The position numbers and the translations under genes are program-made. Positions 1,497 through 38,137 of a stretch of DNA of 64,000 bases are shown here, in pieces. Each line of letters begins with the position of its first letter. Within the stretch, counting starts at the first letter, position 1. The DNA lies in NCBI GenBank assembly GCA_964036045.1, contig OZ038378.1, positions 97,588,001 to 97,652,000 of the forward strand, written 5' to 3'. This DNA is from Eutreptiella sp. 'Long Island Sound 2002'. Taxonomy: Eukaryota > Protista > Euglenida. The notes beneath the pieces were generated by a model. The model was given only the letters and a program-made list of their open reading frames with translations. It did no database searches and was not told the DNA's origin.

Positions 1497-4400
1497 TCAG
1501 CAGTGTAAATTGCAATACTGCAATGATGGACCTCCAAAGGCCGGATTCAAAATGTGATGAAAGCAGACAGCACTTCTCGTGCGAACAGGCACCGTAGCAG
1601 GCCCAAAAAAGTACAAGTTGCAAAATTTGCGCCCTGCAGAGCGCAAAAAAATCGAAACCATATAAAATCCACGCATCAAAAAGGGCTCAGAGAATTCATT
1701 TCTTGCCCTTCTTCGCTGGTGGCTTCGCCTGCTGGGCTTTTGCGGCCAGAGCATCCATGGCAGAAGTGGCATCGGGTGTTTGAGGGGTGTTCGGTGTTTT
1801 TTTTTCTTTGGGGGACGAGGAGTGCCATCTGAGGTCTTGCGCTTACTGCCCACTGGAGCATCAGCAGGTGCATCCAGGGCATCGACCTGCTCAATTTCAT
1901 CCTCAGACCTCTCCTCCTCTGGGGCCTGTACCTTGGCTACCTCACACAAACACCCCTCATCGATGCAGTGGAACAACTCCCGCCAGTCCACAATATAAAA
2001 ACAGTCCATTTGTGTTATGGTGGTCCCTAGCTGGCTCATGAACTCAGGCTTGTCAGCATACTTGCCTGTGTATGGAACCACAACAGAGGTTGATTCCGTC
2101 AGGCATCTGAAGAGGTGACAGGGCATCATAACATTAGAGGTGACTGCCAGAATCCAAGCAGATTCCTCAGGAGCTCGTGTATCGGTGGGCACAACCCTCA
2201 GAGCCTTCAGAAACCAACCAATAACAGGGAGTGACAGGGATGCCTTGTACTCGCCTTGATCATATCAAAAAAAGCTGGGTACCTTTATGCCTAACTTATG
2301 GGGGATTCCAAAATGCACTGTTCTCTGCACCATCCGCATAGTAGGATTGCCAGTAGTCTTATTGTACGTAGTAGTTGAGAGCCATTGGCAGCCATCACAG
2401 CTATCCAGCCCACACAATTGGTCGAGCAAGAACTTGAGTGCCTTGCCAGAACCCACAACGGCTATGGGGACCTCCTTGCCCAGTACCATGTCCAATAAGG
2501 GATGAACCTCACCCATTTACTCATCCTCAAGCTCCACAAGGATCTGCATGGGTACATAGGGATACTAGGAGTGGGTGGGGCAGTGCTGGGGGGGGGGGGG
2601 GCACACAGGCAACAGGCCCCCGGGGGGGGGGGGGGGGGTCAAACTGAATTCGGACATCGAGACATCCAGACAAAGAATTGTGCTATGGCAGTGCATACCG
2701 CAGCAAAAGGCGGGTATGCGGCGCCAGCAGGCAGGCCCCTGGTACCACCTAACGAGAAGATCCTCATTTCTCCCATAGCGTCATTCGCGTTGCCACCCTC
2801 AGTCGTCTGCAAAAGTGATGGTGATGCACCCATCTCCTTCAACGTCAATATTGCCAGTTTCTCTCCACTGTTGTCCACCTTTGGTATCACCGGCGGCTTT
2901 GACATAGCCAGTTGGAAGGGACGCCACTCCTCACTTGCCCAGAGCTTGCATTCCTCCACAAAAGACCAAGGAGGATACTCAGAATTTGCTGACCGGACCC
3001 AGTTGACAAAATTCAACTTAATTGCTGTATTTCTGGTCACCAGCTTCCGTACCAGTCAGTTGCTCTAGATTTCCTGGGAGGGCGCATGAATAAATCCACA
3101 CAAGGTGTTCGAATGACATTTCGGTAGCAATGCGCTCTGCGGAGCGCAAACGGATGCACAGGTCGAAATTTAATGTCGCATTTGGTGGTACAGGAAATTT
3201 TACGCTCTGCGGAGCGCAAATTAATGCACAGATCGGAATTTAACGGCTGATTTGGTGGTACAGGAAGTTTTACGCTCTGCAAAGCACAATACGACGGCAC
3301 TGTTGCTTTACGGGCCAGATTTGAGAGCACGCATACTTCGAGTTTCGTGGATCATGGTATTCTCTGGATGGAGGTACACGTACTCCCAGATGCGGTCATC
3401 CTTCAGTCTCCGGCATAATTTGTTGAACCCATGTAACGTTGCCTTGTCCGATGCCCAGTAATCGATGATCACCTGGCAGTGGTCCGCATCCAGGCCCAAT
3501 GCAGGTCGAAGGGTGGTACAGGTAATCCTTGCAGGCGGTAACAATGGTATACAGGACTGTTGGTGACGTGTTCTGTGACCCTAGGACACATCGAGCGGCA
3601 GGACATTACCTTCCTTGCAGACTCTCGCAACATTCTTCAGCCCAACCTCGCATCTGTTCTCGGTTGCTACCACCAGGCGCTGTCGGGGTCTCTAGACTTT
3701 CCACAGGTTCTCCTGACACCCAAAACCGAAGGAGGTTTACGTAGTAGTTGAGAGCCATTGGCAGCCATCACAGCTATCCAGCCCACACAATTGGTCGAGC
3801 AAGAACTTGAGTGCCTTGCCAGAACCCACAACGGCTATGGGGACCTCCTTGCCCAGTACCATGTCCAATAAGGGATGAACCTCACCCATTTACTCATCCT
3901 CAAGCTCCACAAGGATCTGCATGGGTACATAGGGATACTAGGAGTGGGTGGGGCAGTGCTGGGGGGGGGGGGGGCACACAGGCAACAGGCCCCCGGGGGG
4001 GGGGGTCAAACTGAATTCGGACATCGAGACATCCAGACAAAGAATTGTGCTATGGCAGTGCATACCGCAGCAAAAGGCGGGTATGCGGCGCCAGCAGGCA
4101 GGCCCCTGGTACCACCTAACGAGAAGATCCTCATTTCTCCCATAGCGTCATTCGCGTTGCCACCCTCAGTCGTCTGCAAAAGTGATGGTGATGCACCCAT
4201 CTCCTTCAACGTCAATATTGCCAGTTTCTCTCCACTGTTGTCCACCTTTGGTATCACCGGCGGCTTTGACATAGCCAGTTGGAAGGGACGCCACTCCTCA
4301 CTTGCCCAGAGCTTGCATTCCTCCACAAAAGACCAAGGAGGATACTCAGAATTTGCTGACCGGACCCAGTTGACAAAATTCAACTTAATTGCTGTATTTC

Positions 4401-6183
4401 TGGTCACCAGCTTCCGTACCAGTCAGTTGCTCTAGATTTCCTGGGAGGGCGCATGAATAAATCCACACAAGGTGTTCGAATGACATTTCGGTAGCAATGC
4501 GCTCTGCGGAGCGCAAACGGATGCACAGGTCGAAATTTAATGTCGCATTTGGTGGTACAGGAAATTTTACGCTCTGCGGAGCGCAAATTAATGCACAGAT
4601 CGGAATTTAACGGCTGATTTGGTGGTACAGGAAGTTTTACGCTCTGCAAAGCACAATACGACGGCACTGTTGCTTTACGGGCCAGATTTGAGAGCACGCA
4701 TACTTCGAGTTTCGTGGATCATGGTATTCTCTGGATGGAGGTACACGTACTCCCAGATGCGGTCATCCTTCAGTCTCCGGCATAATTTGTTGAACCCATG
4801 TAACGTTGCCTTGTCCGATGCCCAGTAATCGATGATCACCTGGCAGTGGTCCGCATCCAGGCCCAATGCAGGTCGAAGGGTGGTACAGGTAATCCTTGCA
4901 GGCGGTAACAATGGTATACAGGACTGTTGGTGACGTGTTCTGTGACCCTAGGACACATCGAGCGGCAGGACATTACCTTCCTTGCAGACTCTCGCAACAT
5001 TCTTCAGCCCAACCTCGCATCTGTTCTCGGTTGCTACCACCAGGCGCTGTCGGGGTCTCTAGACTTTCCACAGGTTCTCCTGACACCCAAAACCGAAGGA
5101 GGTTTCCAAAAATGCGCTCTGCACGGCGCAACGGGTATGAGACGTCAATAACTACCTTCATATTTAGGACACATGCAAGCAGAAGCGCTCTACAGAGCGC
5201 AAATTCACCAAACGCCACTATTTTAATGGGGACAGGCAATGAACCGGTTTCTCGGGTCCACGGAGCTGGCCAGCCTTTCGTAGCGCAGCCATCAGGGCTA
5301 GTTTTTCGTCTTGCTTCCACTCCTCACTTTCGTACTCCCACCAAATTGTATTGCCCACTTGGTACAGCTCCATGCCGGCCACGAACCACTGTTGCGCATT
5401 TGAGTCCCCAGTGACCTTTTCTCTGATGCTGAGCGGTGTGTCTGTCCTGCCAAATCTGCCACCACATAACCCATCCAGGTTGGGATCTCCTTTCGTTTCG
5501 CACATAACTCCTTCCACCATTCGTACGCCGCGGCAATCAGGTGTTGGAAGGCGATGACGTAAAAGATATTTGCTGCAGAGGACATAGGGGTACATGTGGC
5601 AATATTAAAATGAGGAATGACAGCACAGGAGCGCCCTGCAGAGCGCAACGAGACAAACACACTTATTATTGATACTGAAAATGGAGCAGACACATCAAGC
5701 TGCAGTCCCTGTGTACATTGCACCTAAAGATCGCCGGACGATGCACTCCAAATGCCTGTGAGGTGGATGCTGCTTGAAACTGGCCACCCGTGCCGCCACG
5801 AGTTGAGGATCCCTCTTGCGCACTTGCCGATACTCGCAATTGAGATCCTAGCGCAGTTTCTGGAAAGGGATCTTGAAGTGCTTTGGTTCCACCCACTCCG
5901 TGAGGCTGTTCTTCACCATTGCCTTTTCCATACTATCAATGTTCCGGGCCTTCGTTGCAGGATCGTCCTGAGAAGCATTCTTGGAGGGTGTCAAATAGGC
6001 CTCCAGGGCTTGTCTGAGATTTTTTGAGGTCTCATCTCCAGGAAGTGGCAACTCAGTCTCTGAAGGCTCCTCCATGTTGCGTAAAATGCAATGCCAAAAA
6101 GGGAGAAAACGCAAGAAAACAGGTGCATTGAAATCAGAAATGGGCAGAAATCTAAATTTACTGCTCACAATCGGATTCTTCAA
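1497..6183 (-). pseudogene. Second large ORF (ORF2) of element A, function unknown, disrupted and partly duplicated
   Basis: Fragments 5848-6183, 5218-5595, 4675-4911/3308-3544, 4006-4407/2639-3040, 2265-2516 and 1497-2192 are collinear with homologous blocks in ORF2 of element B. Confidence 0.65.
2365..5104. repeat. Near-perfect tandem duplication of about 1.37 kb (2365-3737 / 3738-5104)
   Basis: Identical ORF translations in both copies; the only differences I saw are G-run lengths (6 nt). Confidence 0.95.
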
Positions 6184-6199
6184 GAAGAAAAGACAAATC

Positions 6200-8327
6200 C
6201 TCTTCTAAACATGTGAATTCTTCAACCACATCACCATCTCAGCTAGACACAGTGATTATACTACGTTGGTCCACCATTTCCTCACAGTCATCACCGTTAT
6301 ACTCTTTTTGCACTTCGTCCTCACCATCTCGTACACCCACCAGGCCAACTTGGGGGCCAGGTGGTGCAGGAGGGGCTGGGGGGGGGGGGGGTGGACGCTG
6401 GCGGTATCATTGTGGGAGGGGGTTCCGTCTAAAGATGTGGTCCCTTTCCGCCATGGCCGCGGCGATTTCACGATGAGTATACCGTGGACACAATGAATTA
6501 AGCACATCTACAGTTTCATTGTCCACATCCACAGCACCTGCACGTGTGTGTAATGTTTTCACCAGAAAATCTTGCAGCCGTCGGGTTGAAAAGGGATCCC
6601 GCAGTTATCCCGGGAAAGCCATGGACTGCGGTTAGGTACCCACCACCTTCACCTGAGGAGCAGACGACCATTCCATAGGATGGGGGATACGGTCCGTATC
6701 CCGCACAAACATTGAAAGGTGCATCCGAATGGCATCTACAACGCGCTGCTGAAGCCTGCTGTTCTGCAAATCCTTTTTACCCCTTGTAGCCAGGGCCACT
6801 AGCAGGAAAGGGTCAATGGCCCCCTCGAGTTTGCAGGAGGTGGATGAGAATTGCCGCAACTTCTCAACAAATCGAGAGAGCATGGCCTCACAAGGTTCCT
6901 CGCTGTGCATACTGGGGCGGGGGGGGTTGTACCATACCATAGGACCCACAACAGTTTTGCTACTGCTAAGGTTCTGAGATATTCGTGTGAACCCTCAGAA
7001 CCATCAAACAATCGCAACACAGCCAACATACACATATTCAACAACAATTGTGCTGGGTGAGGCACTTGAACTCTACGCCCCGTAGACCAGTTGCAATCAC
7101 GGACCACCATACCCAAAATAAACAAATTGGGGACGTAATCATTCAACAAGTTGAAGATTGCCTCTGTTTGTTGCAAACGCTGTTGTTGCAGTACCGACCT
7201 ACTGCCAACTCGAGCGCTCTGTAGAACGCAAAGATTTTGTTTCAACTGTTGCAAGTACTGGGGGGCAACGAGTAACAGACTCATGAACAGCCTTTCCTTC
7301 CAAATGAGCTTGGAGTGTGTGTAAACATCCGGTTCAGGACTTTGTGGACCAGATGACAAAAAGCTACATAGAGAGAAGAATGTGCGATACACTGCTTCGC
7401 AGCAGTACTTGTACGCATGCCAGACACCATACACCATAGGACAGTAACGGAGAACATTATGAACCTTGTAGACGTCATATGTACTAGAGTACAACATTTT
7501 TGCCACACTGTAAAAAATCTTCATATCGATCAACATAGGCAGAACCCGGTTGGACTTCTGTTGCGGACTGACCACAAACTTCAAAATTCGAGCTAGATCA
7601 CACTGGGTGCCAGTAAGCAGTGGGGAAAGTAGAAGGGGTTTCCACTGCAAACTCTCAACCCCTTTGCGTTTCACATCTAAGGGGCACCTTACATCTGCCA
7701 TAGTGTAAGGGAGGCGTTTAGTGCATTGTCCAAGTTAGCAAGCAAAGTGTTATGACTTTGAACAACTGATGTCGCTATGTCCCCTATTTTGGAAAACAAA
7801 CTACCCAGTTGAGGGTATCCTAGAAAAACATCCAGTTCACGTTGCAGCGGCAGAATTGCAAATACAGAACATTTCAACGATGCCTTGGCACCAAATGGGG
7901 TGGGTAAGCAATGTTTCCTGTAGCAGTTGTCATACCACAAAAAACAAGGGGAACTGAAAAGCTCGTCTAGACGCTGAGCAGCAACATTGGAGGCCTGCCG
8001 TGATAAACTCGGGGCACTCTACAGACATAAACCAGTATAGGATAATTTACGGCGTGCTGCACGAGACATGGGAACGTCAGCCTCAACAGAACTACGCTTG
8101 GTACAGGGTTTCCATTGCTTATGCAATAACAAATAAAGATTGTATGACACCTTGCACAATTGATTAAACCAAGGCAAACCTTTACCCGTTACCTTCATAG
8201 TTGTCAACATCTGTTGAATGTCTCCGAAAGTTCGGTAATCACCTTGATCAGCCCTCAGTGCCATAAAAAATGCAAAGAACTGCAGGGCATAACCACCATG
8301 GGAATAAGCATGCTGCATTATATCCAC
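6200..8327 (-). pseudogene. Putative DDE-type transposase of element A (frameshifted), unclassified, Academ/DUF6589-like pattern
   Basis: ORF pieces 8019-8327, 7689-7940, 6799-7701 and 6632-6949 share ordered blocks with copy B: WYDN, PLDVKRKGVESLQWKPLLLS, LPMLIDMKIFY, YGVWHAYK, HSEEPCEAML, then a Pro-rich and acidic tail. It lies inside TIRs. The catalytic D-D-(H)-E reading is inference. Confidence 0.7.
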
Positions 8328-9365
8328 ACCTGAAATGTATTCTCGCTCCTACAAGAAGGCGCGGAACAGTGAGGCATCAATGGCACGAACAAGCCCGAAA
8401 AGAAACTAAATGAAGGGATACTGGTCAAGTAACGTTGCAGGGATACATGCCACGTTAAATCGATGAACAACAAGTAAATTTGTGCTACCAAAACAAGGAC
8501 AGTCAAAAACTTTGCGCTCTGCAGAGCGCAAACAATGCAGAACAACCAAAAACAGGGATCACCAGTGAGCATATCACGCTAAATGTGCTCTGCAGAGCGC
8601 TCCAGTCGGCAAAATAAGAAAAAACACCAATTGTCATGCGTTGTAAGCATTTGCGCTCTGCAGAGCGGAACACGGGCAACTGGTCAAGAATGGCTGTACT
8701 ATTCTGTGGCACAGAACATTGAATCATACTAACAAATGGGGGAACCACAAATACATGTCACAAAATGCGAATGTACCATACCTTGTCACCTTATAGGTCC
8801 TGGTGTCCCCTCCAGCCATGTACTGTCCCACACGACTGTCCAAAACCCAATGACGATCCATACATAACTTGACCAACCAACAAAATGTACTCCAAAATAG
8901 TACTTCGGCCAGATTTGCGCTCTCCAGAGTGCATGGAATAGGAATTGAAGGAGATGACGGGCTGATTTGTGGAGACAGGGTTTGGAGCGCTCTGCAGAGC
9001 GCAACAGGCCAGATTTGCATTAAAAAATCAAGTAACGTATGTTTGTGGATTGCTCGTAGGTGCGGCTTAACAATGGTTGTTCAGGCAACGGAGCGCTCTG
9101 CAGATCGCAAACACTTATAGTTGTTGAAAATCATGGCCTGAAGTGGACAGTTGGGCTTCCTTGCCCTCTGCAGAGCGCAACAGACTCGAGGTCCTTGAAA
9201 TTGGCGTTTGTTTTTGATGTTCCACACAGCGGACCTGTAAAGGGCTCAAGAAGCAATGTAACGAAAAGGGGTGTGAAACGTGCAAAGATGAAACCTCCAA
9301 TTTCCATCATGAAAACAGACACTTTCCAATTGCCCATTTTGGGTCTCATGCAGTGCCCGGAGTGC

Positions 9366-9386
9366 TGACCTAAAGAGCCGGCTAAG
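9366..9386 (-). repeat. Right TIR of element A
   Basis: TGACCTAAAGAGCCGGCTAAG, followed by TSD CCTAAA. Confidence 0.92.
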
Positions 9387-9542
9387 CCTAAAAGGGTTCA
9401 GCTAGGCTTCCACGATTTGATACACGGTAAGGCTTATGTCAGCCTTGGGATCAACTGCATGTCCGAAATGTATGTGCGAACGTTCGGAATGAATTGAAAG
9501 TACATGTTTTTGTGCATTCTTGTCATCCTAAATGTATGGGGA

Positions 9543-10618
9543 TTGAGAATTTGCTATTCAAAGTACGGGTTTGTGAGCCACCATAGCACCTAGATACCAC
9601 TGGGGGACATCTGTGGCTGTATGAGACTTTGAACCACTGGGACTTTGCGATTCAAAGTACGGGGGTCTGGGCCACCAGAGCACCTAGATACCATTGGGGA
9701 ACATCCCTGACTGAATGAGACTTTGAACCATGGCGAATATGCAATTCAAACTACGAGTTTCTGAGCCACTAGTGCACCTAGATACCGCTAGGGGACATCC
9801 CTGACTGTATGAGACTTTGAACCATTCGAAATTGGCGACTCATAGTACGGGTTTCTGGGCCACCAGAGCACCCAGATACCACTGGGGGACATCCCTAATT
9901 GTATGAGACTTTGAAACATTGGGGCTTTGCGATTCAAAGTACGGGTTTCTGAGCCACCAGAGCACCCAGATACCACTGGGGGACATCGCTGACTGTATTA
10001 GACTTTGAAACATTGGGAATTTGCGATTCAAAGTACGGGTTGGTAGGCCACCATAACACCCAGATATCACTGGGAAACATCCTTGACTGTATCAGACTTT
10101 GAACCATTGGGAAGTTGCGATTCAAAGTACGGGTTTCTGGGCCACCATAGCACCTAGATACCAATGGGGGACACCCTTGGCTGTATGAGAATTTTAACCA
10201 TTGGGAATTCGGGATTCAAAGTACGGGTTTCGGAGCCACCATAGCACCCAGATACCAGTGGCGGAGCTCCCTGACTATATTACACTTTGAACCATTGGGA
10301 TTTTGCGATTCAAAGTGCGGGTTTCTGAGCTACCGGTGCACCTACAAATCAATGGGTGACATCCCTGACTGCATGAGACTTTGAACCATTGGGATAGTGC
10401 GATTCGAAGTACGGGTTATGGAGCCACCAGAGCACCCACATACCACTAGGGGACATCCCTGACTGTATGAGACTTTGAACCATTGGGCATTTGCGATTCA
10501 AAGTACGGGTTTCGGAGCCGGCAGAGCACCCAAATACCACTGGGGGACACCCCTGATTGTATGAGACTTTGAACAATTGGGAATTTGCGATTCAAAGTAC
10601 GGGTTTTTCGAGCCACCA
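9543..10618. repeat. 94-bp tandem satellite, about 11.5 units
   Basis: The CAAAGTACGGG anchor recurs every 94 nt from 9559 to 10593, and whole units are similar along their length. Confidence 0.95.
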
Positions 10619-10711
10619 AAACAGCATGTACCATTCTGTGTACTAACATGTCCGAGCGTCCCACATTTTATATGGGTGATTTTGTGTACCAAGTGAAGAC
10701 GATTATAAGTA

Positions 10712-12180
10712 GTGAGTCGGCCTTCTTCGCCATCGTGTACACAGTGCCATGATCGCAACGGGCACACCCACAGGCCATCTCGGTTCCAAAGGAATTTTTG
10801 GCAACCCGTGGGTCATCTTGAGGAGGCGACCATTGAGTTCGATTCTTGGAGCCGGAAGATGTACAAGGTGCCCAAGGGACCTCGCTACGGGCGAGAAAAG
10901 ACGCAGAAGGTCAACAGAATTGCCCTCAAGGTGCGAAGGGGACTGGGGTTGTCCCGTGGCCAGTTGCACGTTCTGCACCGGCTATGCCCCAGCCTACACT
11001 GCAACGCCACGCAGCTTGCAAGGGAAGAAGAAATAACACTCCCCGTTTTCAACAGAGACATCACAAGCTCACGGCTCCTTGCACATGTCTGCTTTTTTCT
11101 GCCCCGGTTGCCATGAAAAAAAAAAATGCAACCGTGCCAACAGCCATCCACCCCTTTGTCACCGTTTATTTTCGCCGATGGTGTGTTCCCATGGGCTCGG
11201 GGGAATGTAAATTTGCAAGTAGCCGTCATGGACTGTGTGGGCAGTCTCATCCCCCACATGGACACCGGTGTACCTTGTAGCACCATGCTCGTGACGTGGC
11301 GGGAAATGTCCAAGAAGGCATCTAATACATGGCGCATGGAGAGACGCATAGAAGAACCGATCCTCCATCAGAAAAATAAATTTCCAATCTCACAGATCAG
11401 TGCCGTGCTAACCCCTGATTTCATGTGTGGTGACCACCATTATATTTGGTCCGAGACCCGCACCAACCGGTGTTCAGTGTGTGACTAGTCTCCGACGGAT
11501 CACATGCAAAAGCTCTTTTGGGGTACACACACCCCACCACCAATCCCGCTTTCCGTCTAGGTGCCGTTGACAATGTCGAGAACATGCAATTTGTGCAGCC
11601 CGTGCTGCACAATTTGAAGGGCACAGGGTCCCGCCTTTTTGGTATATGTGGGTGTGGTATGCATGGCACCCAGCAATTTGCATTCCTTGCTGTGCTCTCA
11701 AAGGTGGCAAAGCATTGTGTTGTGTCTCACACTACACAGCAAGCAGCTACAGTGACCAGCAACGCTTTGTTATCTGTACTGAGTCTCACAAGGTGTGAGT
11801 CGCGTGAGCTGTGGGCCAAGGTTGTTTTAGGCATGATTTTGCATCTGCCTTTCTACTGGGCTACCTTGTCACTATGCCTTGTGGCAGTGCTGCTTTATGC
11901 CAGTGACCTGGAATTGCCTACTGTTAAATGGAGAGCAACCGGTGCCCTACACACTTTTTTTACCACTGCTAGTCATGAAGTTGGCGGAGGGCGGGAGTAC
12001 AAGAACATTGTATCGCCATTCTTTGTTGCACACATGGGGTTTGCCCACATTGTCAGTATGCACTAGCGATGAGGCAGGGGAGAGCAACATCCATCTCAGC
12101 AAACGCTTTGCCCGGGTGACCTCAACAGTCCCGGACGACGGCATTCAGAAATGCTTGACTCATTAATTATACATGAAGCT
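10712..12180 (+). pseudogene. CxC + KDZ (Kyakuja-Dileera-Zisupton)-like transposase relic
   Basis: Ordered motifs across frames: FIFADGVFPW (CxC-type G.FP), RCSVCD*SPTDHMQKL, LFGICGCGMHG (G...C.HG), FVAHMGFAH (FH.yaH-like) and DEAGESNIHLSKRFARVTST (GE..E). Family assignment is from remembered motifs. Confidence 0.6.
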
Positions 12181-12660
12181 GTTGCACACAAGTGCAACTA
12201 GGCGCAAGGTCGCCTATCGCGGTCACAACGGCGGCCCATCATTCTCGAGCCTTGCATTTTGGGAGATGTTGAAGTGTGGCGGAACGGCATGGTGCACGCC
12301 CTGGCATTGTGGGCGTTCATTGGGGATGCCACCATGTACACGGATAAGAGTCCGCAAAGTTTGAACCTGGGACTGCGAGGGGTTCAGGGTCGCATTGGTG
12401 TTTGTTGTGTGTGTTGGCAGTGTGCCCACGTACAGAGCAGCACGCGACATTGGGAGCTATTTCATTTCATCACATTTCAGGCTTGGCCAATGTGGGGTGC
12501 AGCCAAGGAAGGGTGGCCTAGGAACCCCCCTCAAGATGACATGCTAGTGCACCGCTAAAGTAACGCACCATATTTATGGGGGGTGTTTTGGGAGTCAAAA
12601 TAAGCGTATAGGAACTATCACGACCTCGGTGTCGGACCAAGGGAGTCAACTCTTTTCGGG

Positions 12661-12815: not shown

Positions 12816-12846
12816 CTTGCCCCTCAAAGGCAGCCCGGTTTTCGCA

Positions 12847-14820
12847 ATGTCTGCCTCTCCCTTCGCTTGGGATTGGATGGCGGCCGTCACAGGCCCCGCC
12901 GGTACACGTGGCTGCTCCCTTCCGGAGGGGCAGACCTTCCACGACACTGCCATCCCAACCAACTCCGCCGTGACTTGGCCGCCGGGCACAACCATTGGCC
13001 CGGTGCGCATCACCAAGCCCATCCTCCGCGAGAGGGCCCCCTGTGCCCTCTAAGACCTCATTGCGGAGATAGTGCGCCGCAACCCCGACATCACCGCTTT
13101 CCACGTGCGGCCCAGCGGAGCGGACTACTCCTCCTTGCTGGAGTCCCTGTCCACCCACCTGCCCAGCGACCACGCCCGGATCCACAGCCAGCACATGGCT
13201 GCCAACCCTGTGGATGCCGAGCCGCCCATCACCCTCCGGTTCGCTTCCACGAAGCCAAGGCCTGCCACTTTCACCAAGGAGCGGTGGTACAAAGAGACAG
13301 CCAAGACGAAGCTGTTCCTCTTCGATCCGCGGCAGTCCGGTGAGGAGACCCTCCCCTTCTACTGTTCACGGCAGTGGGGCAGTCACTCGGCAGCTCCAAC
13401 ACGGGGTCGGGTGCGCGACAAAGAGCGGGCTGGAGGTGACGGGGAGGGCAAGCAGCCTGCTGGCCGCATAGGCACTCGGCACGGTGAGTCCGGGGCCGTC
13501 AACGGGGTTTTTTTGCGGAGTATGAGGTGGAGGAGGCGCACACAGAGGCATTGGCGATCACCGAGGAGCACTAGGTCCGCATCTTCAACCACAACTGCCC
13601 AGTTCCTGACCGAGCTCAGGACCCGCCGCACCGCAAGATGGTGTGGGAGAAGCTGGAGGACATGTCCAAGCCTCCAGATGGGGAGGAACACATCCAACTG
13701 TGGGACCTGCTGCCCCTGACGGCCATGATGACGCCGGTGAAGGCCAAGATGGAGGCGATCTAGGGCAAGACGCTGCATGTCATGACGCAAGGGTAAATCG
13801 AGTCCATCACCCACATTCGACAACTGCCGCACCGAGATTTCCCAGCAGTGTCACTTCCTGTGGATGGCATTGCCCTCTCCCTGGCTTGGGCAATGTCGAT
13901 GGATATCCGTGACGATGATGTTTGCGCACAGTTTGTCGCCATATCTGCCCGTGCCTTCCCTCAGCCTTAGAGCATCCACCGCATGCCAAGGAGAAGGGGT
14001 TCCCTGTGGGTGATCTGCGCGACGGTGGTGCATGAAGGAGGCGGCCTGCCATGGCTGCGGAACCGGGGTCTCGCTGTATCATTGCGTGTTGTGGGCTGTC
14101 TACGCATACTGTGTCCTACGCCACCACCCACGCCATCACGCCCCTGTTTTGGGCACACAAGGCCGCTGTGAGTTGTGGAGTGCTCAGATGCCGCCGGAAG
14201 CCGACAAGTGAGAAGTGTTTGGGTGTGGAGTGCAAGTCCTTTGCCGCAATCACACGGGGATCAAGTGCAGCAAGTGCGACACCGAAGCAGCAGTAGCAAC
14301 AACATCCGATCCACGGAGTGCCAAGGCCGCTGATCGGAGTCGTGTCCCTTCCCTTCAGCACATGGTGACCTGTTTGATTCCATTGGATGGGACGACAATT
14401 TACACCGGGCATTGCGAGGCAGGGGCCGCACCACATGTGTTTCCCGATGACACAACCCCCAAGCCGGAGGACTGCCCACTGGCGGAGCATGCAGAAGAGA
14501 GTGAGCGGCTGCCCTGGCCGAGATTGGAACACCGCGCCTTGTTGGTTACGCCGCCTGGGAGCATTCTGGTGGTGGTGAACGGCCGCTTCGGAGGATTCAC
14601 CCAGGGTACCAGGGTTACAGAGCAGAGCAGTGACGTTTTGGTGTACCGGATGGAGATGGCACCACCCCGGCCCAGACCCGTGGACCCGAGCTTGTTGATG
14701 GCGGCCGGGGCGATTGTTTGCAACACCAAGGTGGCACACGAGCAGGCCTTTTGGTGCGCATGCCAGCATGTTGACACTGGGTGCCCTTTGAATCGGAGGG
14801 CCTTTGGTGGGAGGGGTTGA
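12847..14820 (+). pseudogene. Decayed ORF with a Cys/His-rich (PHD/Zn-finger-like) segment, function unknown
   Basis: ATG at 12847. Fragments 12817-13053, 13072-13719, 14051-14296 and 14215-14820, the last two containing CIIACCGLSTH and CGVQVLCRNHTGIKCSKCD. Multiple stops and frameshifts. Confidence 0.45.
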
Positions 14821-14950
14821 AAATGCAATGTGGCAAATATATGGTGAGTACTGGTTGCCAAGGGTTGGCGGTTGTGGCAATGCAAGGGGAGGGTTGTTTG
14901 AGGGCTCAAGTTGGGCACAGTGTGCGGGCTGTGGCATGTGCATGCCACTC

Positions 14951-15170
14951 GGGAACCCCCCCAAGAACCCCCTTCCTGCACAGGAACCCCCGCCCTTTCC
15001 TCCACAAGAACCATCCCAGGAACCCCGAAGGAACCCCCTTCCTGCACAGGACCCCCCTCCCTTCCTTCATAGGAACCCCCCTTCCTGGACCCCTTCCTAG
15101 ACCCTTCCTGGACCATGCCTACACAAGAATCCCCCCCCCCCTTCCTGCGCAGGAACCCCCTTCCTGGACC
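14951..15170 (+). repeat. Pyrimidine-rich repeat block 2
   Basis: Units such as aggaacccccttcctgcacagg. Confidence 0.85.
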
Positions 15171-15199
15171 AAGTCCTGTCCCCTTTCGTCCCTTGCATT

Positions 15200-16380
15200 T
15201 TGCGTACTTCTCGTCATGCTAACGTCTACGTTTACCCGCGGCTGGCACTGAAGTCCGTCGATGAGGAGGAGCGGGCTGCCCCGCTGCCAGTGGCACCATC
15301 GGAGGCTGCGCGGACTGTGGATGGGCGACCACCAAGTCTTCAGGACGCTCCGACATGGCTGTTGCAATCGACGCTGACCATCACGGACATGCACAGTCCT
15401 GCGACCAGGCAGGGGGGCACGTTGTGGTGTCGCGACTGCACACCGACGGTCCGGAAGGGGAAGGCAGCCACTCCCCTGCAACTGTTGTTGCGAGTGGCAT
15501 GTACGGACAGTCTGGCCGAGCTGCCCCGAGGGCATGCAGGACATGGCAAGAGGTACGTGGTTGCGCAGTACTTGTGCCTTGTTGGCCATGCCAAGGCCAA
15601 CAACACATGGTCTTTATTGGTGTACAGCGAGCAGACCAGGACACTGGTGAGTCTGGCAAGGCTGACGGATTTGGATGGCAGCGTCCCCATTGAGGTGCAA
15701 GACGCGGTTGAAGAGTGGCTTGAGCAGTACCGCAAGCGGTAAGAACAGGGTCAATTGGATGGACGCTCACATGTGAAGAAGGAGCCCGGCACGGCCGCAA
15801 GTACAGAGCCACTGTGGCAGCCACCTGGGCCCGAGGTCAAGTCGGAGCAATCAGAGAAGGCGGTGCGGGGATTCGTGAAGCGACCCGCCCCGAGGACCGT
15901 CATCACCGACTCCCCCTCCAAGCGGCGCGTACAAGGCAGCCCGAGGCGGGCAAGTCCAATGGCAATGCACACGGGGACAGTGATCACGCAGCTGGCACCT
16001 GGGTTGCAAGAGGTCGTGCGCACGGCGTTGAAGGAGGTGTTGCCTGGTGCCATTGAGAAGGCGATGGCAAGTAGCGGCAATGCCTGGGAAGAGCGGGCCA
16101 CGGAGCAGGCAACCAAGAGGGAGGTCGAAGCACGGGATCAGGTTGTGAATCGGAGGCAACCATTGCAAGTTGGTAGGCACAAGTTGTTGCCTTGGAAGAC
16201 CGGTTGGAAGCTGCCAAAGACGCGGCGCGCGAGGCGCAGGCAAGCAAGGTCAAGGACGAGTCTCTGCTGGAGGAGAAAACTGCAGAAAGTGACCGGGCGT
16301 TGAGCATCCCCAACCGGACGTACGGCAGAGGGCCCCAGCCCCAGCAAGTGATGAGGAGTGGCGAGGCACAGTGGCGATGA
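15200..16380 (+). pseudogene. Decayed ORF (CxxC, Lys/Glu/Ala-rich coiled-coil-like tail), function unknown
   Basis: 15200-15742 and 15755-16303 are in frame across one stop, followed by a shift into 16192-16380; composition is protein-like. Confidence 0.45.
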
Positions 16381-16429
16381 GAGCGCAAGGATCCCGAGTG
16401 TCCCTCCGGTCTTGGCGGCCGTTGAGGGG

Positions 16430-16930
16430 TGCTCGGGTTCTGCCAAGCTGTGTGGGCATGAGACGTGGGGAGACAACCCTTGGTGGCACACTGAGAGGGA
16501 GTTGCGTCCCGGTGGTGGCAGTACACGTGTGCTGCGACCAGCCCACTCCCAAGATTGCACGCATGCATGCAAGGCTGTGCGAACCCGCCAAGGGGTGTGC
16601 GACACACTGCACAAAAAAACCCATGCCTTAACCCATAACCAATGAATAGTCCTTTTTGGCGCAACCCTAACGCATATCTAACCCTTATCTTTTTTTGTGC
16701 GCGACAGTCGCGTAGGATAGTAGTCACGTCGTGCGCAGGGCGCGTAAGGTGGTGCCAGGAGCGGGGAGCTTCACATAGCTTCACCCTTGGGGGCACCACT
16801 GAGATTTCTAAGCTCTCCAAGCATGGACGCGGTTGCATGACATGTGTAGTTGGCATGCAGCCAAGGACGCAATGTCTGGCCCCCATGTGACAACGGTGTT
16901 TGAGAGGACCTGGGTAACATCTGTTGTGGC
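16430..16930 (-). pseudogene. Possible minus-strand Zn-finger ORF
   Basis: Within ORF 15984-17219: FFCAVCRTPLGGFAQPCMHACNLGSGLVAAHVYCHHRDATPSQC. Begins just after repeat block 3. Confidence 0.3.
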
Positions 16931-16964
16931 GGCAATGGGGCAGTACACCGAAACACAAGGTACA

Positions 16965-17188
16965 GGAAGGGGGGGCGTTTCGTGTGCAGAAAATGTCTAG
17001 GAAGGGGTACAAGAAGGGGGTTCTTTTACAGGAAGGGGGGGGGGTTCTTGTGCAGGAAGGGGTCCATGAAGGGGCCCAAGAAGGGTTTTCATGTACAAGA
17101 AGGGGGGTTCTTGTGGGGTTCTTGGGACAGTTCCTGGCCAAGAAGGGGGGGGGTTCCTGTGCAGGAAGGGGGTTCCTGTGGGGTTCCC
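16965..17188 (-). repeat. Pyrimidine-rich repeat block 3 (inverted relative to blocks 1-2)
   Basis: The reverse complement begins cacgggaaccccacaggaacccccttcctgcacagg, matching the start of block 2. Confidence 0.85.
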
Positions 17189-17301
17189 GTGGCACTTGCT
17201 GTGCACACCCTGCCCTCACAATTCTTGGCAGGCTTTCATTTTAAATGTAATGCAAAGGCCGTTGCCAATTTCCTTGCCAGTGTAGTTCGTGTGACCCCGT
17301 A

Positions 17302-17905
17302 TTGGGATCTGGAGATGCACGGCGAAAGAGATGGAAATACATTCACGACGTTGTGGGCGCTCTGCTTGGAGATGACGACATCGTTGTGCGCACAACCAGT
17401 AACGGTATAGTGATTGAGTCCAACCGCCACGAGGTGCGCGATGACGACGAACAGCATGCCTCCCAGGAAGTGATCCAAGTGTTGCAAACCGCACACCTAA
17501 TGAGCAGCATCTCCACCTCCAACATCCACGCGCAATATGTTAAAATTGGAGTGCAATTGTACATGAAGGGAATCAAAAGAGTGGCGCAGCAAACTGTTGC
17601 CATGCGTCGCAACGGCCCTGGAGGTTTCATCGGGGGTGGTATCGCGCCGGTTCGCCGCTGTATGTCCACTCCTTGAAGTAGTGCAAAGCCAGCTGACGTT
17701 GGGTAGGGCGTGCAGTACGTTTAACATCCCTGGCAAAGACCAGCTCTTGATTATCATTTGCGCAGATGCTACACCACTATGGCACACCTCGGCCACCAAG
17801 TGCGACATCCACGTGACCGTTTGGTCAGAGGGTGTAGCGGCTGCAAGCGACGTGCGACGCTTGGCGACGTGGTGGGCGTGTGATGGTCCGGATGATACAA
17901 ACTGT
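17302..17905 (+). pseudogene. N-terminal fragment of a putative DDE transposase, truncated by a GC-rich repeat
   Basis: QLLIIICADATPLWHTSATKCDIHVTVW...WWACDGPDD resembles the first catalytic strand (hhhhD.tP) of RNase H-fold transposases; abrupt composition change at about 17905. Confidence 0.4.
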
Positions 17906-20187
17906 CGGTTGGGAGCCTTGCCCCGTTGGGTGTCTCTTTCCCCGTTCCCCGGCAGGTGGTGCCCTTTGCCCTTCCCTTTGCCCCGTGCGTCCTTCTGCCG
18001 CCCACCCTTACCGTGGCGCCGCTCTCCTTCGCGCCCGCGTCCATGTCCCTACCCCTTCCCTTGTCCTTTTCCCCGCTTCTCGCCGTCCGTTACCTTCCTT
18101 CCCTTGCCACTCCTTGTTCCGTGGTGTTGCTCCCCTTTCGCTGCCCCGTCCGTCCCCTTTCCCTTTCCCGCTGGATCGCGGTCCTTGCGCCCCCCCCCCT
18201 TGCCCCCCCCCCCCCCCCCCCCCCCCGGCCCTGCTTGGACCTGCTGCCGCTGGTCGACTTGCCGCTGCATTTGGGGCGGCGTGATGGTTGCTCCCTTGGC
18301 GTGTGGGAGGGGAGGGCTGTGGCCGCCTGTGGCGCCCGTCGGGGAAACGGGCTTGTGGTGCTGGGGCGCTGCCCCACTTGCCGCCAACGGCACTGCTGCG
18401 GCCACCTGCGACTGCAGCCGGGGGCGCCGTCGCAGCCGGCGACGTCAGCTGCACCTGCCGAATACGGCTTCCGGGGGCACAGCAGGGTGTGGTCTCGCTA
18501 CACGTTGGAGCGGTACTTGTCCTGCTCGTTACCAGCCACCGGCGCCCCTGCAGCGCGGCCACCCTCCCCGCTTGCATCCCCCCGCGCCTCCCCCGGTGGC
18601 GTGCTCGGGCTCTGCGCGGTCACGGCGGCCTGCTCTGGTGGCCCGCGCGGGGAGGCGGGGGCCGTGGCCGCGGGGGTGGCCTCGGCCGGCGCCTGCTCCG
18701 GAACTTGCACCACAGCTGGGTGCGCGACTGGGGCGGCGGCCTTTGCCAGGCGTCGTTCCTCCCACTCTGCGGGAGTTTCCCCCTCGGGCGCCGGGGAGAC
18801 GCAAGAGCGGGAGCGCGAGCGGCCGTGGAAGCGGTCGTCCCGGTGGGTGAAGCCGTTGCAGTCCAACATCTTTAGCGGCAGTGAAGCTGTCAAGCACATT
18901 CAGTGTGGCTGACGCGTGTCGCCAAGCCGCGTGCCCTTTGTTACCCGTCCCGCCTCCCTGGTGTGTCGGTGCGTGCTGCAGGTGGTGCGGTGCGGTAGTG
19001 GGGGTAAATGGGTAGGTGTGGCCGCGGCTTTGGAGGGATGACGAGCCGGTTGCAACCCATCAACATTGGTGCGGGAGGTGCGTGAACCACTCGGCCCACT
19101 ACGTACCACAGAGGTCCCACCCGGGGGCAAGGTCTAGGACCATGGGGCCACATGGGTCCTGCAAGGTCTTCGAGGGAAGCGGCACGAGGTGGAGTCCGGC
19201 TACTGCGGTGACGCTCTAGCTCCGCTAAAAGGCCGGCCCGGAGGGGGGGCGGGCCGTAGAGGTGAGGAGGGGTGGCTCCCAAAACGCGCTGCGAGCCCCC
19301 GCGCGTCGCGACGACAAGCAGGAGCAGGAGGCAGCCTCGGTGCTCCTGCCAGAGGGTTTGGCCCCTATCGTGGGCTCTCCTCTTTCTGGAAACGGGGGTG
19401 GACAGGAGCGGGTGGGCCCAGCTGCGGGGCATGTCGGTGGGCAGTGGGGGGTTTGGTTGCGGCGCGGGTTCACGGGGGAAGGCGTCACACACAAACGAGT
19501 ACGGGGGGGTGCGTCTCATCCCGTCCATACCAGGTTTGAGGTTTGAGGTTTGAGGTTTCGGGTACTGAACGCGTTTCGGGTCCGGGGAGCCCCCTGGTCG
19601 GGCCACGTGAAATGCTCCCCACCGGGGCCTAGTGGGGTGCCCTTTGGGAGAAACCTCCCGCCAGGTGGCGGAGATCCCGGGTTCACGGGGCTCGGAGCCT
19701 TGTCCCTCCCCGACTTCCCCATTTTGCCACTGCCCGGTCAGTGTGTCGTTTAGCAACTAGGTTGCAGGCGCTTACCCACTACGTCGCCCCCCTATTGCAT
19801 GGTCGCCCGGGGTGCCGGCGATGTTGGGCCCGTGGTACTGGCTTGTCCCCAGTGGGACCCCCATGGGCTGGCGCGGAGGCTGCCTAGCCGCGGGGCTGGT
19901 GCGTGGCGCAGCGCGCCACTACTGCCTTGGCGGGTGTAGTGCCCTGTTTGTTTCTGCACAGCGCTGGCGGCAGGTCATGGGAGGCAGGGCCGGTGCTTCT
20001 CGTCTCCCTCTCCCCCCCCTCGCCGTCCCTCCCTTATGGCGGGTTGCCCCGTCCGGGTGCCCCTTCTCCTCGCCTGCTAGTACACCATTACAGTTGGTAT
20101 GTGCGTTCCGCGAGCTCGGTCCGGTTGCCCTTTTGGTGCGCGCCGCGTGTCCGTTGTGTGTTCGTGCACTCGCGCTCCCGCAGTGTT
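17905..20187 (-). mobile_element. GC-rich retroelement-derived repeat (decayed RT N-terminus plus Pro/Ala- and Lys/Gly-rich ORF), left part
   Basis: 19520->17905 is homologous to 39390->40790. The minus-strand translation PGMDG..PYSF..DMPRSWAHPLLS..LLLLLVVATR..PPHLYG resembles non-LTR RT regions 0-2. Confidence 0.5.
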
Positions 20188-20490
20188 CTTAGGAGGCCTT
20201 AATTGCCCGGGGGGTGGGGTGGGGGGTCTGCAAAATGAAAGCCATTCATGGGGTGAAAAAAAATGGTGAATTACTACCCCCTAATTGCACACAGCGCACA
20301 ATGTATGAAGTTTTGAACTGCAATCATGCCCCATATTGTCCACTTGGACCATTTTGCCTGCAATTGTGGACACTAGCAAACCATCCAAAACAGGCATTCA
20401 AATTCAAAGAAGTAGCACTCAAGGACAAATTGCATTGTCCACTGAACGGTTCCTGTTGTGTACAGATGACACTCTGTGAAGCAGTACACT

Positions 20491-20663
20491 GATGTATGGT
20501 GAAACAGACCCCCATTTTCAGGGTATTTCATTGAGACGCGAAATTTCGACACATTTGGCAAAATGCAGTATAATGAGATGTATGGTGAAACAGACCCGCA
20601 TTTTCAGGGTATTTCATTGAGACGCGAAATTTCGACACATTTGGCAAAATGCAGTATAATGAG
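20491..20663. repeat. 86-bp tandem duplication, each unit carrying the element-B palindrome
   Basis: gatgtatggtgaaacagac...gcgaaatttcgac...gtataatgag starts at 20491 and again at 20577. Confidence 0.9.
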
Positions 20664-20959
20664 GTATGAAATAATGTCAGTGCATTGCCTGCATGCCACG
20701 GAACAAGATTGATTCACAATATCGCGGACATACGATTCGAACCATAAGGAACTCTTAAGAATCAATCAATACACAAACATACGTCATAGAAATTACCAAA
20801 TGTTGCCTACAAAAGGCAATTGCCTGTGCCAACACCCACAAAGGTTGTGTCAGAATAGGAAATCAAATAAAATCGGACACAAATTAGAATTCAAAATGAC
20901 TGCTCAGAGGATGGTGGTTCTGCAGTCACCATCCTCTCATCATAGCAGTCAAAACCAAA

Positions 20960-23505
20960 TCACCGTCGTCGTTTGTTCCCGAAATGTGTTCCTTTTTGAG
21001 GTTGTTGTTGTGGCTGGGCTGCTGGTGCAGTCCCACCACTCACCAAATTCGCAAAGTTCTCCAATCCCTCTGGTGACGGTGACTGTCCTTTCGGCTCAAA
21101 CAGTGGATGTGTATTGCCTTTGTGTGGCGTGACCAACTGCTGAATCTGCTGCTGTGTCTGCTCCTCGTCATCTTGCGTCGCTGGAGCCTCAACAGAGGGT
21201 GATTGAGCACTTTTCGTAGGCGTTGCTTGGGGCTTGGCACTACCACCTGCATTGACACTAGGGCGATTGCTGGCCGTCCCCTTCTTGAGGTTTGGCTTAG
21301 ATGCCTTCGGCTTTGGGGTTCCCTTGGGCTTGGCATCCACGTCGAGCATACTATCCATGCAGTCCTGTTCATCAGGGTCGTCAGGTACATAAGCCATTCC
21401 AGTCCTGTCGACAGGCATACTCTTGTGCACTTGTGGCAACACAAACTCCCAGTAGATTGCAGCCAGAGGGTCAGCCTCTCTTAAAATACCAGTTGTGAGC
21501 TCAACAATTTCTTTAGGTAGTTCATCAACCGAGGATACCAAATACAACCGAAATATCCGACTTCAGACGGATGTGAAGCTAAATAGCCAGATTTGGAGAG
21601 CAAGACCCAACTAGCACCCAATTTGTAAGATTCATTGCCACTTTCATAACCTCTAGCACCCATTGAACAGCCTGAGGACACAGGATACTGGATAATGTGG
21701 CTTCACTGAACGTGACGTACATCGGCAGCTAAATACATGGTTCAAATTGCGCAAAATGGCGGGAGTGGCGAAATTTCGCTTGATGGTGAGATTTTGTTGC
21801 TTTGAGGGATCAATTCACAGGGGGCAATGTACCTTCCTTGGAATTGGAGTCAACGTGACAATTGTCATCACTGATTGCATCGGAGTGAAATTCGGATTGC
21901 GGCTGCCAGTGTTGTACACCATGACACTCACATGATTCACTCCCTCCTCAGCTAGGTCAGTATGCAGCTAGCTCATGATGATTCAAACATCCGCCAATTC
22001 ACCAGCAACCACCGGTGGTCTCCCCATTGAAACATGTCGCACAGCAAGAGGTGGTAGACCCATGGACCAGCCGTTTGGAACCTCAATGACAGCCAGTATC
22101 AAGGGCAACCCAACGACAATAGCATTTAAAATGGTAGTAGGATTCACAAGCAAAAGTTGAAAGGGGGACTCACCGCCAGTAGCATCTGCCCCACAACTAG
22201 AAATTGTCTTCAAGTGAACCACATTCCCTTCGGAGCTAGCAATGTCAAAGGAATACTGAGGTCTGGCCAGGTGCCTCCTAAAGTCTACATATTTTGAGGA
22301 TGTCAAGAATTCGGCCATGCACACAGAGTGCCATGGAGGTAAAGGCATGTCATCAGTGTACACCCAGTCTGCACAGCGGAACTTCCATGCACCAATCCCC
22401 TTGATATGACGATGTAGGGTAGCAATCTCGGATGTATTTCCTAATATAGAGAAAAACTAGGTGCCCAAACCAGCTGAGAGGCGACATTTCGCCACTATCA
22501 GCAGAATTCGATGATTTCATAGTGCAATTCAGGATGCCTGCACAACATACTGCGGGATGGGTAAACCAGCTCCTCTCGACAGTCAAGATGCATAACAATC
22601 CATCCCCATCGCATTTCTCGTTGGTATTCACGTGCCACTTTAGCCAGTCCTGCAACAGTAGCTCGTGGAGTCTCCATGTATCTGGCACACTGTGACAGGT
22701 ATGGTCCAATGAGCCCCTCCAATGGTTTGAATGATCCAAATGCCAAGGGGATCCTCTTGCTCTCGAAATTGCGTATTCCATCGACTGCTTTATAGCCAAT
22801 TGCCTCAATCATTCTAGCCAAGGGTAGCCAGCGTTGTGCCACACAACCCTACAGTGTATACAACCAAATTTTTCGGGCCCAGGATAGTAATGCGCATCCG
22901 AGCAACAGTCACACACCACGCTTCCTTCATCAGCTATCAGTCCAGCCTCCTCCAACATCTGGCGGCACACGTCGGTGAGACTGAGATCAGCATTCTCAGG
23001 CTCCTCCAAGTTGTCCACCAGCAGCACTGCCCTCTCACTCATGCATGCTGCTGTGCGTGACAGTTGTGCTATCTGCTGGTGGCCGGCCAGGTGTCTCCTC
23101 TGGCGCAAGGGAGTAACCCATCTCAGAACCATACACTCAAACTGCAGTTGCCATCTCAAAGGGTCAAGATTCTTTTTGTCACGTTCACTAGCCAGTCTCC
23201 TTGCTGCACAAAAGACATGCTGAACACCACTGATCCAGAAGCTACCCACTGACGCAATAACGGAAGAAAATTCGTCCACAGGCCCGCACACAAACGACAG
23301 ACGCGTAGGTGCACGTGCAGCAACATACAGCTGTCAGTAATCCCTTGATGATCCCCACGGGAGGTACCCTTGCCAAATCCTCCACCCGCAGCGTCAGTCT
23401 GGTCTTGCTGACCTTCCAAATTTGAGCATGCTCGCGGTTGACATCCACCCGCAGGACGTTGTGGGATAACACCACTGTCTTCTGGACGGCATCTGCTAGA
23501 GTCAT
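20960..23505 (-). pseudogene. ORF2 of element B, function unknown, includes a PHD-like Cys/His cluster
   Basis: Fragments 23242-23505, 22809-23291 (VCDCCSDAHYYPGPEKFGCIHCRVVWH), 22498-22842, 21983-22363 and 20960-21547 are collinear with ORF2 of element A. Confidence 0.65.

Positions 23506-37054: not shown

Positions 37055-37089
<35 letters not shown>

Positions 37090-38104: not shown

Positions 38105-38137
<33 letters not shown>

Follow-up and report, generated by a model that had tools for sequence, protein, structure and literature searches.

A second gene with a predicted methyltransferase fold in cut-and-paste transposons of the euglenid Eutreptiella

The locus analyzed here raises the question of what is encoded by the second open reading frame (ORF2) found in two decayed transposon copies of the euglenid Eutreptiella sp. 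'Long Island Sound 2002'. The copies, designated A and B, lie on the minus strand of a window of 64,000 nucleotides (nt) (contig OZ038378.1, positions 97,588,001–97,652,000), which has a low gene density and no viral content. The contig measures 201 Mb, and the whole assembly 2.28 Gb. A preliminary description of the window had proposed a large conserved ORF2 encoding an accessory protein, namely, a chromatin reader, an anti-silencing factor or a DNA-binding partner. The interpretation favored here, with about even confidence, is that the elements form a cut-and-paste group with two genes, and that the second of these, ORF2, encodes a pseudo-methyltransferase that would serve as a DNA-binding accessory protein for the element's own DNA. 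This role was deduced from the family and not from the two dead window copies. Three families were compared: A and B, to which the window copies belong, and the young third family C. These elements were absent from the published descriptions found by literature searches.

ORF2 and the transposon group that carries it

Inverted repeats starting with CTTAG and 5-bp target duplications were found in both window copies and in another 10 copies, which belong to families A, B, and C; among the latter, the duplication was exact in nine, and that of L011 had one 1-nt mismatch. Candidate loci of the group number in the thousands in the genome, and internal-deletion derivatives that lack all or part of ORF2 and retain intact ends are abundant. 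With terminal inverted repeats (TIRs), a duplication of fixed length, many copies, and deletion derivatives, the elements belong to the cut-and-paste (DDE-type) DNA transposons. The residues D203, D337, and E541/E544 of their first gene, ORF1, are invariant or nearly so. Ten ORF1 relatives gave no match in Pfam, and the ORF1 profile matched no sequence in the PDB; its product seemingly represents a DDE-like protein without a superfamily name. A metagenome scan with ORF1 detected only contigs of 4 kb or less, too short to hold ORF2.

ORF2 consists of five blocks, e1–e5. In family C, ORF1 (P0001, 696 aa) has its own stop codon and occurs at 64 genomic places with at least 95% identity; at 28 of them, e3 is located 1.2–1.4 kb downstream on the same strand. 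The e1 block opens with an ATG in families A and C and in L041, and in full copies of family C this ATG lies 297 nt past the ORF1 stop. In-frame GT-AG introns separate e1 from e2 (124 nt) and e2 from e3 (79 nt) in family C. Intron losses differ by family: e3 and e4 form one open frame in L033, e4 and e5 form one frame in L034, P0088, P0145, P0152, and P0074, and most B copies, as well as L038, read from e2 into e3 in frame. The intron separating e1 from e2 is present in every family. The order and strand of ORF2 are constant in all three families with complete copies. Judging from this arrangement, it was concluded that the five blocks encode one polypeptide, separate from ORF1, with an estimated length of ~750–800 residues. 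The "large ORF" reported previously is accordingly a five-block spliced gene, of which both window copies are pseudogenes, but its description as element-encoded is borne out, and the ORF1 stop and the separate ATG exon ~300 bp downstream in the young family set it apart from ORF1.

That ORF2 represents the C-terminal part of one long ORF1–ORF2 transposase, produced by splicing or read-through, is quite improbable. The two genes are indeed close to each other on the same strand, and L017, L019, and L020 contain one open frame running from ORF1 into e3. However, these three loci are internal-deletion derivatives with different breakpoints, full copies retain the stop of ORF1 together with its conserved tail, ORF1 relatives of 680–756 aa are present on short contigs with their own ends, and e1 has an initiator ATG in families A, C, and L041. 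The 856-aa frame of L017 (family C) was rejected as proof of one protein, as, according to TBLASTN, the terminal 60 residues of ORF1 and ~1.2 kb of DNA are missing from this copy. The 708-aa frame of L018 was likewise rejected as a part of ORF2, being caused by the insertion of a long interspersed nuclear element (LINE) after e3. This LINE-like element, with endonuclease and reverse-transcriptase ORFs, occupies positions 1568–5427 of L018 (G000 C4:160895700-160905690), just after e3 of family C.

The ratio of nonsynonymous to synonymous substitution rates (dN/dS) was calculated for the window B copy against six sister copies, and the values are descriptive, since all pairs share the window branch; in family A, differences were too few to judge. 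In family B, dN/dS was 0.32 for e2, 0.36 for e3, and 0.34 for e4, compared with 0.62–2.4 in the other two frames of the same DNA, 0.60–0.78 in intergenic DNA, and 0.57–1.47 in an intron. The ratio for ORF1 was 0.35–0.49. The proposed selection on ORF2 is thus supported, being purifying and comparable in level to that on ORF1. In addition, ORF2 motifs are kept across families whose DNA no longer aligns.

The ORF2 peptides quoted in the preliminary description were all found on the minus strand where it had placed them. Its claim of ordered blocks common to A and B was assessed for each block by comparing the Smith–Waterman score with those of 2000 shuffles, and by BLASTP in parallel. Two blocks proved significant: block 1 (4735–4878 in A, with an identical second copy at 3368–3511, and 22588–22731 in B) and block 2 (4261–4344 and 2894–2977 in A, and 22259–22342 in B). 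The score of block 1 was 63 against 23.9 ± 4.2 for shuffles (z = 9.3; BLASTP E = 1e-6) and that of block 2 was 56 against 27.1 ± 4.4 (z = 6.5); neither was reached by any of the 2000 shuffles. The correct register of block 2 was missed by BLASTP. Using the window copies alone, no significant A–B similarity was detected for e1, e2, and the end of e5 (z ≤ 1.1), so these parts were linked through family C, whose exons match those of A (e3, 1e-18; e5, 5e-42) and of B (e3, 1e-6; e4, 7e-5). In agreement with this bridge, multi-family alignments contain common columns throughout ORF2. The acidic-then-basic tail noticed in A and B occurs in every family. As for the FGC tripeptide found in both copies, its positions are non-homologous, and the coincidence is meaningless.

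Predicted fold of the C-terminal half

The exons of ORF2 were searched one by one. The e5-core profile matched 231 proteins among 1.84 billion, all of them unnamed ORF fragments of no more than 453 aa, and these relatives were diverse enough for modeling. An earlier AlphaFold model of the C-terminal half, built from a 28-row alignment, reached a predicted local distance difference test (pLDDT) score of only 41. With an 82-row alignment, the e4–e5 region of the relative P0145 was modeled with a mean pLDDT of 75.3 and a predicted template modeling score (pTM) of 0.70, and core residues ~90–310 were mostly at 81–95.

The top Foldseek matches of this model were CcrM, M.PvuII, a Type III Mod subunit, M1.HpyAVI, and M.RsrI, followed by METTL3/14, METTL4, and MTA1; alignment of the listed proteins in VIA-align gave Z-scores of up to 12.5. 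When 48,161 chains were searched independently with VIA, the 20 best were all beta-class methyltransferases or MT-A70 proteins (Z 8.2–12.5, 160–215 residues aligned), and the next fold was dehydroquinate synthase with a Z-score of 5.7. The elements of the model follow the permuted order of the beta class (motifs IV–VIII before X and I–III), colinear with M.RsrI, CcrM, and M.PvuII (Z 10.4–12.5), and only ~30 residues are present at the target-recognition site. According to the model, the ~300 residues that precede the tail (e4 and e5) are predicted to adopt the circularly permuted fold of beta-class N6-adenine/N4-cytosine DNA methyltransferases and MT-A70 proteins. The structure search that had been suggested as a check of ORF2 therefore places its C-terminal half within the beta-class amino-methyltransferase/MT-A70 fold. 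An acidic stretch separates the domain from a lysine-rich tail.

Beta-class DNA methyltransferases (PF01555; M.RsrI, M.PvuII, CcrM, M.MboIIA, and Type III Mod) have the same order of elements, beta4-alphaD-beta5-alphaE-beta6/7 hairpin and then beta1-alphaA-beta2-alphaB, and are colinear with the model over 185–215 residues (Z 10.4–12.5, identity 6–11%). Unlike these enzymes, ORF2 has no DPPY-type motif, no FxGxG loop, no Pfam score, and almost no target-recognition domain; its gene belongs to a eukaryotic transposon, and the protein has long extensions at the N-terminus as well as a charged tail. The (D/N/S)PP(Y/F/W) motif IV after strand beta-4 was found in none of the 31 sequences covering this position, which reads E-[VL]-P-x-x-W in B-like families and [DE]-[VI]-H-P-L-L in A/C-like families. 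The GxG or FxGxG loop (motif I) after strand beta-1 was absent from all ~58 sequences, with W-[VIL]-L-x-x-[TS]-x-x-P-x-L found instead, and the motif-II acid is not conserved. The family has conserved features of its own, namely, W..W....PxPPW..V.....W......R..L..P in e4, G.PVxVxGExADVK after strand beta-5, and a tryptophan opening strand beta-1. Two candidate assignments were rejected: the N-terminal PxPPW of e4 as motif IV, which structural alignments put ~90 residues later, and the HPL.. and GSG sequences of e5 as an HPxxKP motif and motif I, respectively, the residues of which are not conserved in B-like families.

The profile of PF01555 gave no match to e4–e5 of L034 at E ≤ 10 or to ten relatives at E ≤ 1. 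Whole-genome scans with PF01555 (in six frames), PF05063, and PF02195 matched other loci and no ORF2 copy. Neither Pfam, scanned with each exon and with 20 relatives, nor the sequences of the PDB, queried with both single proteins and profiles, gave any match, and the Atlas look-up for e4–e5 was blank.

The MT-A70 family, and especially its non-catalytic members METTL14 and MTA9, resembles ORF2 in fold (Z 8.2–10.4) and in having no target-recognition domain. Motif IV of METTL14 is degenerate (EPPL), and by analogy the degenerate motif IV of ORF2 would suggest the role of a nucleic-acid-binding scaffold. Unlike in MT-A70, PF05063 is silent on ORF2, with no hidden Markov model match and no DPPW at the catalytic position despite the fold match at Z 8.2–10.4, and the element encodes no paired catalytic subunit. 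Given that the usual catalytic motifs are absent in every relative and that Pfam gives no score, the protein was read as a pseudo-methyltransferase and DNA-binding accessory; judging by model and alignments, its domain is probably of the methyltransferase fold and non-catalytic.

It is rather unlikely that ORF2 is instead an active N6-adenine/N4-cytosine DNA methyltransferase that methylates the element's own palindromes (see below), two types of which have a CTGCAG core. Such an enzyme could maintain transcription of the element, protect it from silencing, or couple its transposition to replication, in the manner of Dam methylation in IS10 and Tn5. In favor of activity, the predicted fold is shared with beta-class DNA methyltransferases, enzymes that mostly target short palindromes; in B-like families, an acidic residue, a proline, and an aromatic residue follow strand beta-4 (E-[VL]-P-x-x-W); and ORF2 is under selection at the level of ORF1. 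In addition, eukaryotic retrotransposons, including those of Euglena gracilis, are reported to have co-opted adenine methyltransferases (Dam-type domains), and promoter-linked N6-methyladenine (6mA) was reported in Euglena (2026 preprint, 10.64898/2026.05.21.726589). Against activity, (D/N/S)PP(Y/F/W) is missing at motif IV, where A/C-like families have [DE]-[VI]-H-P-L-L, the GxG loop occurs in 0 of ~58 sequences, the motif-II acid is not conserved, and neither PF01555 nor PF05063 scores any piece of ORF2 or any of the thousands of genomic copies. An anti-silencing role, as proposed earlier, would depend on catalysis, which the degenerate motifs make less likely.

A passenger gene, i.e., a decaying methyltransferase captured from a host or virus and having no role in transposition, would also explain the lost catalytic motifs, the many broken copies, and the abundant deletion derivatives that lack all or part of ORF2 and keep intact ends. 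Nevertheless, this explanation is very improbable: ORF2 has stayed in place in every deeply diverged family examined, its own reading frame alone gives the selection signal, and the predicted domain is well folded and retains the family's own conserved motifs.

The N-terminal half, the private palindromes, and the proposed role

In the N-terminal half, e1 contains the motif ...LR.D...GQ.RK...L..L..PP...W, and e2 starts with Y.IGGQH[IV]..A; e3 is the best-conserved block of ORF2. The pattern of e1 and of the e2 start recalls the ParB/Srx and DGQHR-type motif. This resemblance suggests a tentative ParB-like N-terminus, which the searches did not support: a genome scan with PF02195 detected 10 loci, none of which was ORF2, e1 and e2 profiles found no ParB among PDB sequences, and in place of the arginine-rich GxxRxxA box of ParB_N, ORF2 reads GGQH[IV]xxA. 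A language-model look-up provided weak leads to a ParB_N cluster (0.90) and a DUF3723 cluster (0.91). Bacterial and phage ParB–methyltransferase fusions (PF02195 and PF01555) would have the same domain order as ORF2 only if its N-terminus is ParB-like. Unlike in these fusions, ORF2 is missed by the ParB_N model, has GGQH[IV] at the arginine box, and contains ~300 residues between the two parts instead of ~100. A canonical ParB–methyltransferase is present in the same assembly: a 552-aa frame on the small contig C339 (37334–38590) passes the cut-offs for both ParB_N and N6_N4_Mtase and may be of bacterial or viral origin or derived from a giant endogenous viral element (GEVE).

The preliminary description had noticed a PHD-like Cys/His cluster in copy B. 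A Cys/His-rich stretch does exist there, at 22812–22901, immediately after the conserved end of e2, and it would suit a chromatin reader built on a PHD-like zinc finger. However, the second half of the cluster (GC.HC..WH) results from a 1-nt shift of the reading frame that is peculiar to the window copy and L009; L002, aligned from the mid-region only, shares the frame of the window copy at this place. Ten of the 12 B-family copies checked read ...EKIWLSAL-stop at the cluster and then continue into e3. The conserved stretch reads VCDCCxDAHYCP. Comparison of the alignments revealed no equivalent Cys/His cluster in the sister families, dN at the cluster is raised to 0.17 compared with 0.064–0.074 in the flanking exons, Pfam gave no match for the cluster, and a conserved C4HC3 pattern of zinc ligands, as in a PHD finger, was not found. 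As far as sequence reaches, the PHD-like reader is refuted, and a chromatin reader of this kind is scarcely credible. Among the accessory functions considered earlier, the DNA-binding partner is thus favored and the chromatin reader is not supported.

Each of the three families carries its own short palindrome in multiple copies. Eighteen copies of the family A palindrome (type TTTG CGCT CTGCAG AGCG CAAA; 0.03 expected by chance) are located at 1628–9179, concentrated upstream of ORF1 (8513–9179) and in the e3/e4 intron, and none lies outside element A. In family B, eight copies of the GGCGAAATTTCGCC type (0.25 expected by chance) were found at 20537–27400, near both ends, in the ORF1–ORF2 gap, in the e3/e4 gap, and in the broken e5, with none outside element B. 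One copy of family C contains nine palindromes (0.08 expected), all inside the element. The frame TTTG-4nt-CTGCAG-4nt-CAAA is common to A and C. At 2559–2572 of L024, a family C palindrome lies within the coding sequence of ORF1, where it encodes LGTAVP, suggesting that a palindrome resembling a binding site is kept also within the transposase gene.

The mechanism proposed for the pseudo-methyltransferase accessory is as follows. Loss of the catalytic motif and of the beta-1 glycine loop in all relatives suggests that the domain would no longer transfer methyl groups; by analogy with METTL14 and MTA9, it may serve as a DNA-binding module. Its likely target would be the element's own DNA, with 8–18 private palindromes per family situated toward the ends, in the gap separating the two genes, and within ORF2 introns. 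By binding there, ORF2 might mark "self" DNA and help the ORF1 enzyme to assemble on the right ends or to enter the nucleus, a job analogous to that of TnpA in En/Spm and of the Myb-like protein in PIF/Harbinger.

Few DNA transposons have two genes; their known accessory proteins, namely, TnpA (En/Spm), the Myb-like protein (Harbinger), and MURB (Mutator), handle element-specific recognition and host silencing. In En/Spm (CACTA) and PIF/Harbinger, as here, a second gene stands beside the transposase and short motifs are repeated inside the element and near its ends, and the role proposed, end recognition or nuclear import, may be shared. Unlike those of TnpA and the Harbinger protein, the predicted fold of ORF2 is methyltransferase-like and unrelated, and the repeats are perfect palindromes that also occur dispersed in the introns.

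Several points weigh against the accessory interpretation. The exon joins were deduced from sequence, the modeled protein is the relative P0145 and not a window copy, and the motifs were mapped by secondary-structure order and aligned ranges of the model, not by residue-level superposition. The dN/dS of e1 (0.58) and of the tail (0.55) is no different from the non-coding background. Of 31 sequences, 23 have an acidic residue where motif IV would lie, and G-E-x-A-D-V-K after strand beta-5 is strongly conserved; both features may leave room for an unusual active site. Finally, the putative reader of the palindromes may be ORF1 rather than ORF2.

A more specific proposal, put forward tentatively as a possibility, is that ORF2 arose from an ancestor of the ParB–methyltransferase type and is now the sequence-specific "address reader" (or writer) of the 8–18 private palindromes of its family, the protein and the palindrome co-diversifying.

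The two window copies, their surroundings, and significance of the group

Element A is a decayed copy at 1165–9387 (minus strand). Its 21-nt TIRs starting from CTTAG (1165–1185 and 9366–9386) match at 20 of 21 positions, an additional C is present at 9387, as at one family A end, and the target duplication is CTAAA (1160–1164 and 9388–9392). The remnants of its transposase-like ORF1 (6650–8012), with WYDN and YGVWHxYK motifs, are in several broken frames. The e1 block (5716–6075) begins with the ATG of MEEPSETELP, contains the GQxRK...PP...W motif, and has one in-frame stop; in e2 (5221–5600), the N-terminal part with the GGQH-type motif is frameshifted relative to the sister copy L021. The e3 block, which includes block 1 (4681–5091, duplicate at 3314–3724), has two in-frame stops and is followed by e4 with block 2 (4009–4413, duplicate at 2642–3046; W..PxPPW..V..W..R..L..P). 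The e5 block (1500–2516) comprises the methyltransferase-fold core and the acidic/basic tail, with a stop between 2193 and 2264. Blocks 1 and 2 occur twice in this copy due to a near-perfect tandem duplication at 2365–5110 with a unit of 1367–1373 bp (about 2365–3737 and 3738–5110), which doubles e3, e4, and the start of e5. The units differ solely by 6 bp in a G run, and L021 lacks the duplication, which hence either arose very recently or reflects an error of assembly. Copy A is dead: apart from the tandem duplication, it has stops in three blocks (e1, e3, and e5), and its e2 is frameshifted. About 60 bp from its right end, ~13 units of a 94-bp tandem repeat (~80% alike) begin and occupy 9448–10687.

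Element B, also decayed and on the minus strand (20188–27599), has perfect 21-nt TIRs (CTTAGGAGGCCTTAATTGCCC) and the target duplication GTGTT (20183–20187 and 27600–27604). Its ORF1 remnants (24325–27144) have three in-frame stops and contain ~656 bp of extra DNA at 25723–26378, absent from the sister copies spanning the site. This DNA is flanked by 37-nt direct repeats (25686–25722 and 26381–26417) and looks more like a local duplication or repair event than a nested transposon. In e1 (23335–23505) of the window copy, mutations have altered the G, R, and W that are otherwise conserved in the motif; e2 (22902–23291) extends from FWISGVQH... to ...EGSVVC; e3 with block 1 (22546–22842) is open; and e4 with block 2 (21986–22384) continues into the first part of the methyltransferase-fold core (IEVPNGW ... 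VVAGELADV). Of the e5 block (20963–21985), the segment 21548–21985 is interrupted by stops and contains an intron, and the segment 20963–21547 encodes the end of the fold and the acidic/basic tail. Copy B is dead, with mutated e1 motifs, stops in e5, and the three stops and the ~656 bp of extra DNA in ORF1. Near its 3' end, an 86-bp tandem duplication (20491–20662, 99% identical) doubles one palindrome copy.

Elsewhere in the window, short direct-repeat blocks of CACTGAGCC / CACTTAGCT units are located at 35858–35960 and 41113–41215, 5.25 kb apart, with a 2.9-kb near-palindromic structure between them (36117–39047) whose arms are 84–95% complementary; this may represent another family of CTTAG-type elements. 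The stretches 18000–20000, 28000–32000, and 40000–48000 have 67–71% G+C, against ~50% in their surroundings, with a strong T-over-A skew, and translate to low-complexity frames rich in proline and glycine.

Methyltransferase-carrying retrotransposons (DAM-DIRS/LTR and DNMT-carrying elements) are likewise mobile elements of protists, with Euglena among the reported hosts, that carry a domain of DNA-methyltransferase type. Unlike them, with their Dam-type domain inside pol, the elements described here are of the cut-and-paste type and have a separate gene, a different methyltransferase class, and degenerate motifs. The Dam-type domains in retrotransposons (10.64898/2026.05.21.726589) are the nearest theme in the literature.

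The results describe a very successful and apparently unnamed group of elements, in which an accessory gene built on a predicted methyltransferase fold without the usual catalytic motifs stands beside family-private palindromes. For annotation, this group accounts for thousands of orphan ORF fragments in Euglena-type assemblies. If ORF2 reads or marks the palindromes, this would provide a simple, testable model of how sister families stay separate and would add a cut-and-paste case to the recruitment of methyltransferases by mobile elements. Should the address-reader proposal be true, dozens of related families with thousands of copies would avoid cross-mobilization by a two-component self-recognition system of a kind not described for eukaryotic DNA transposons.

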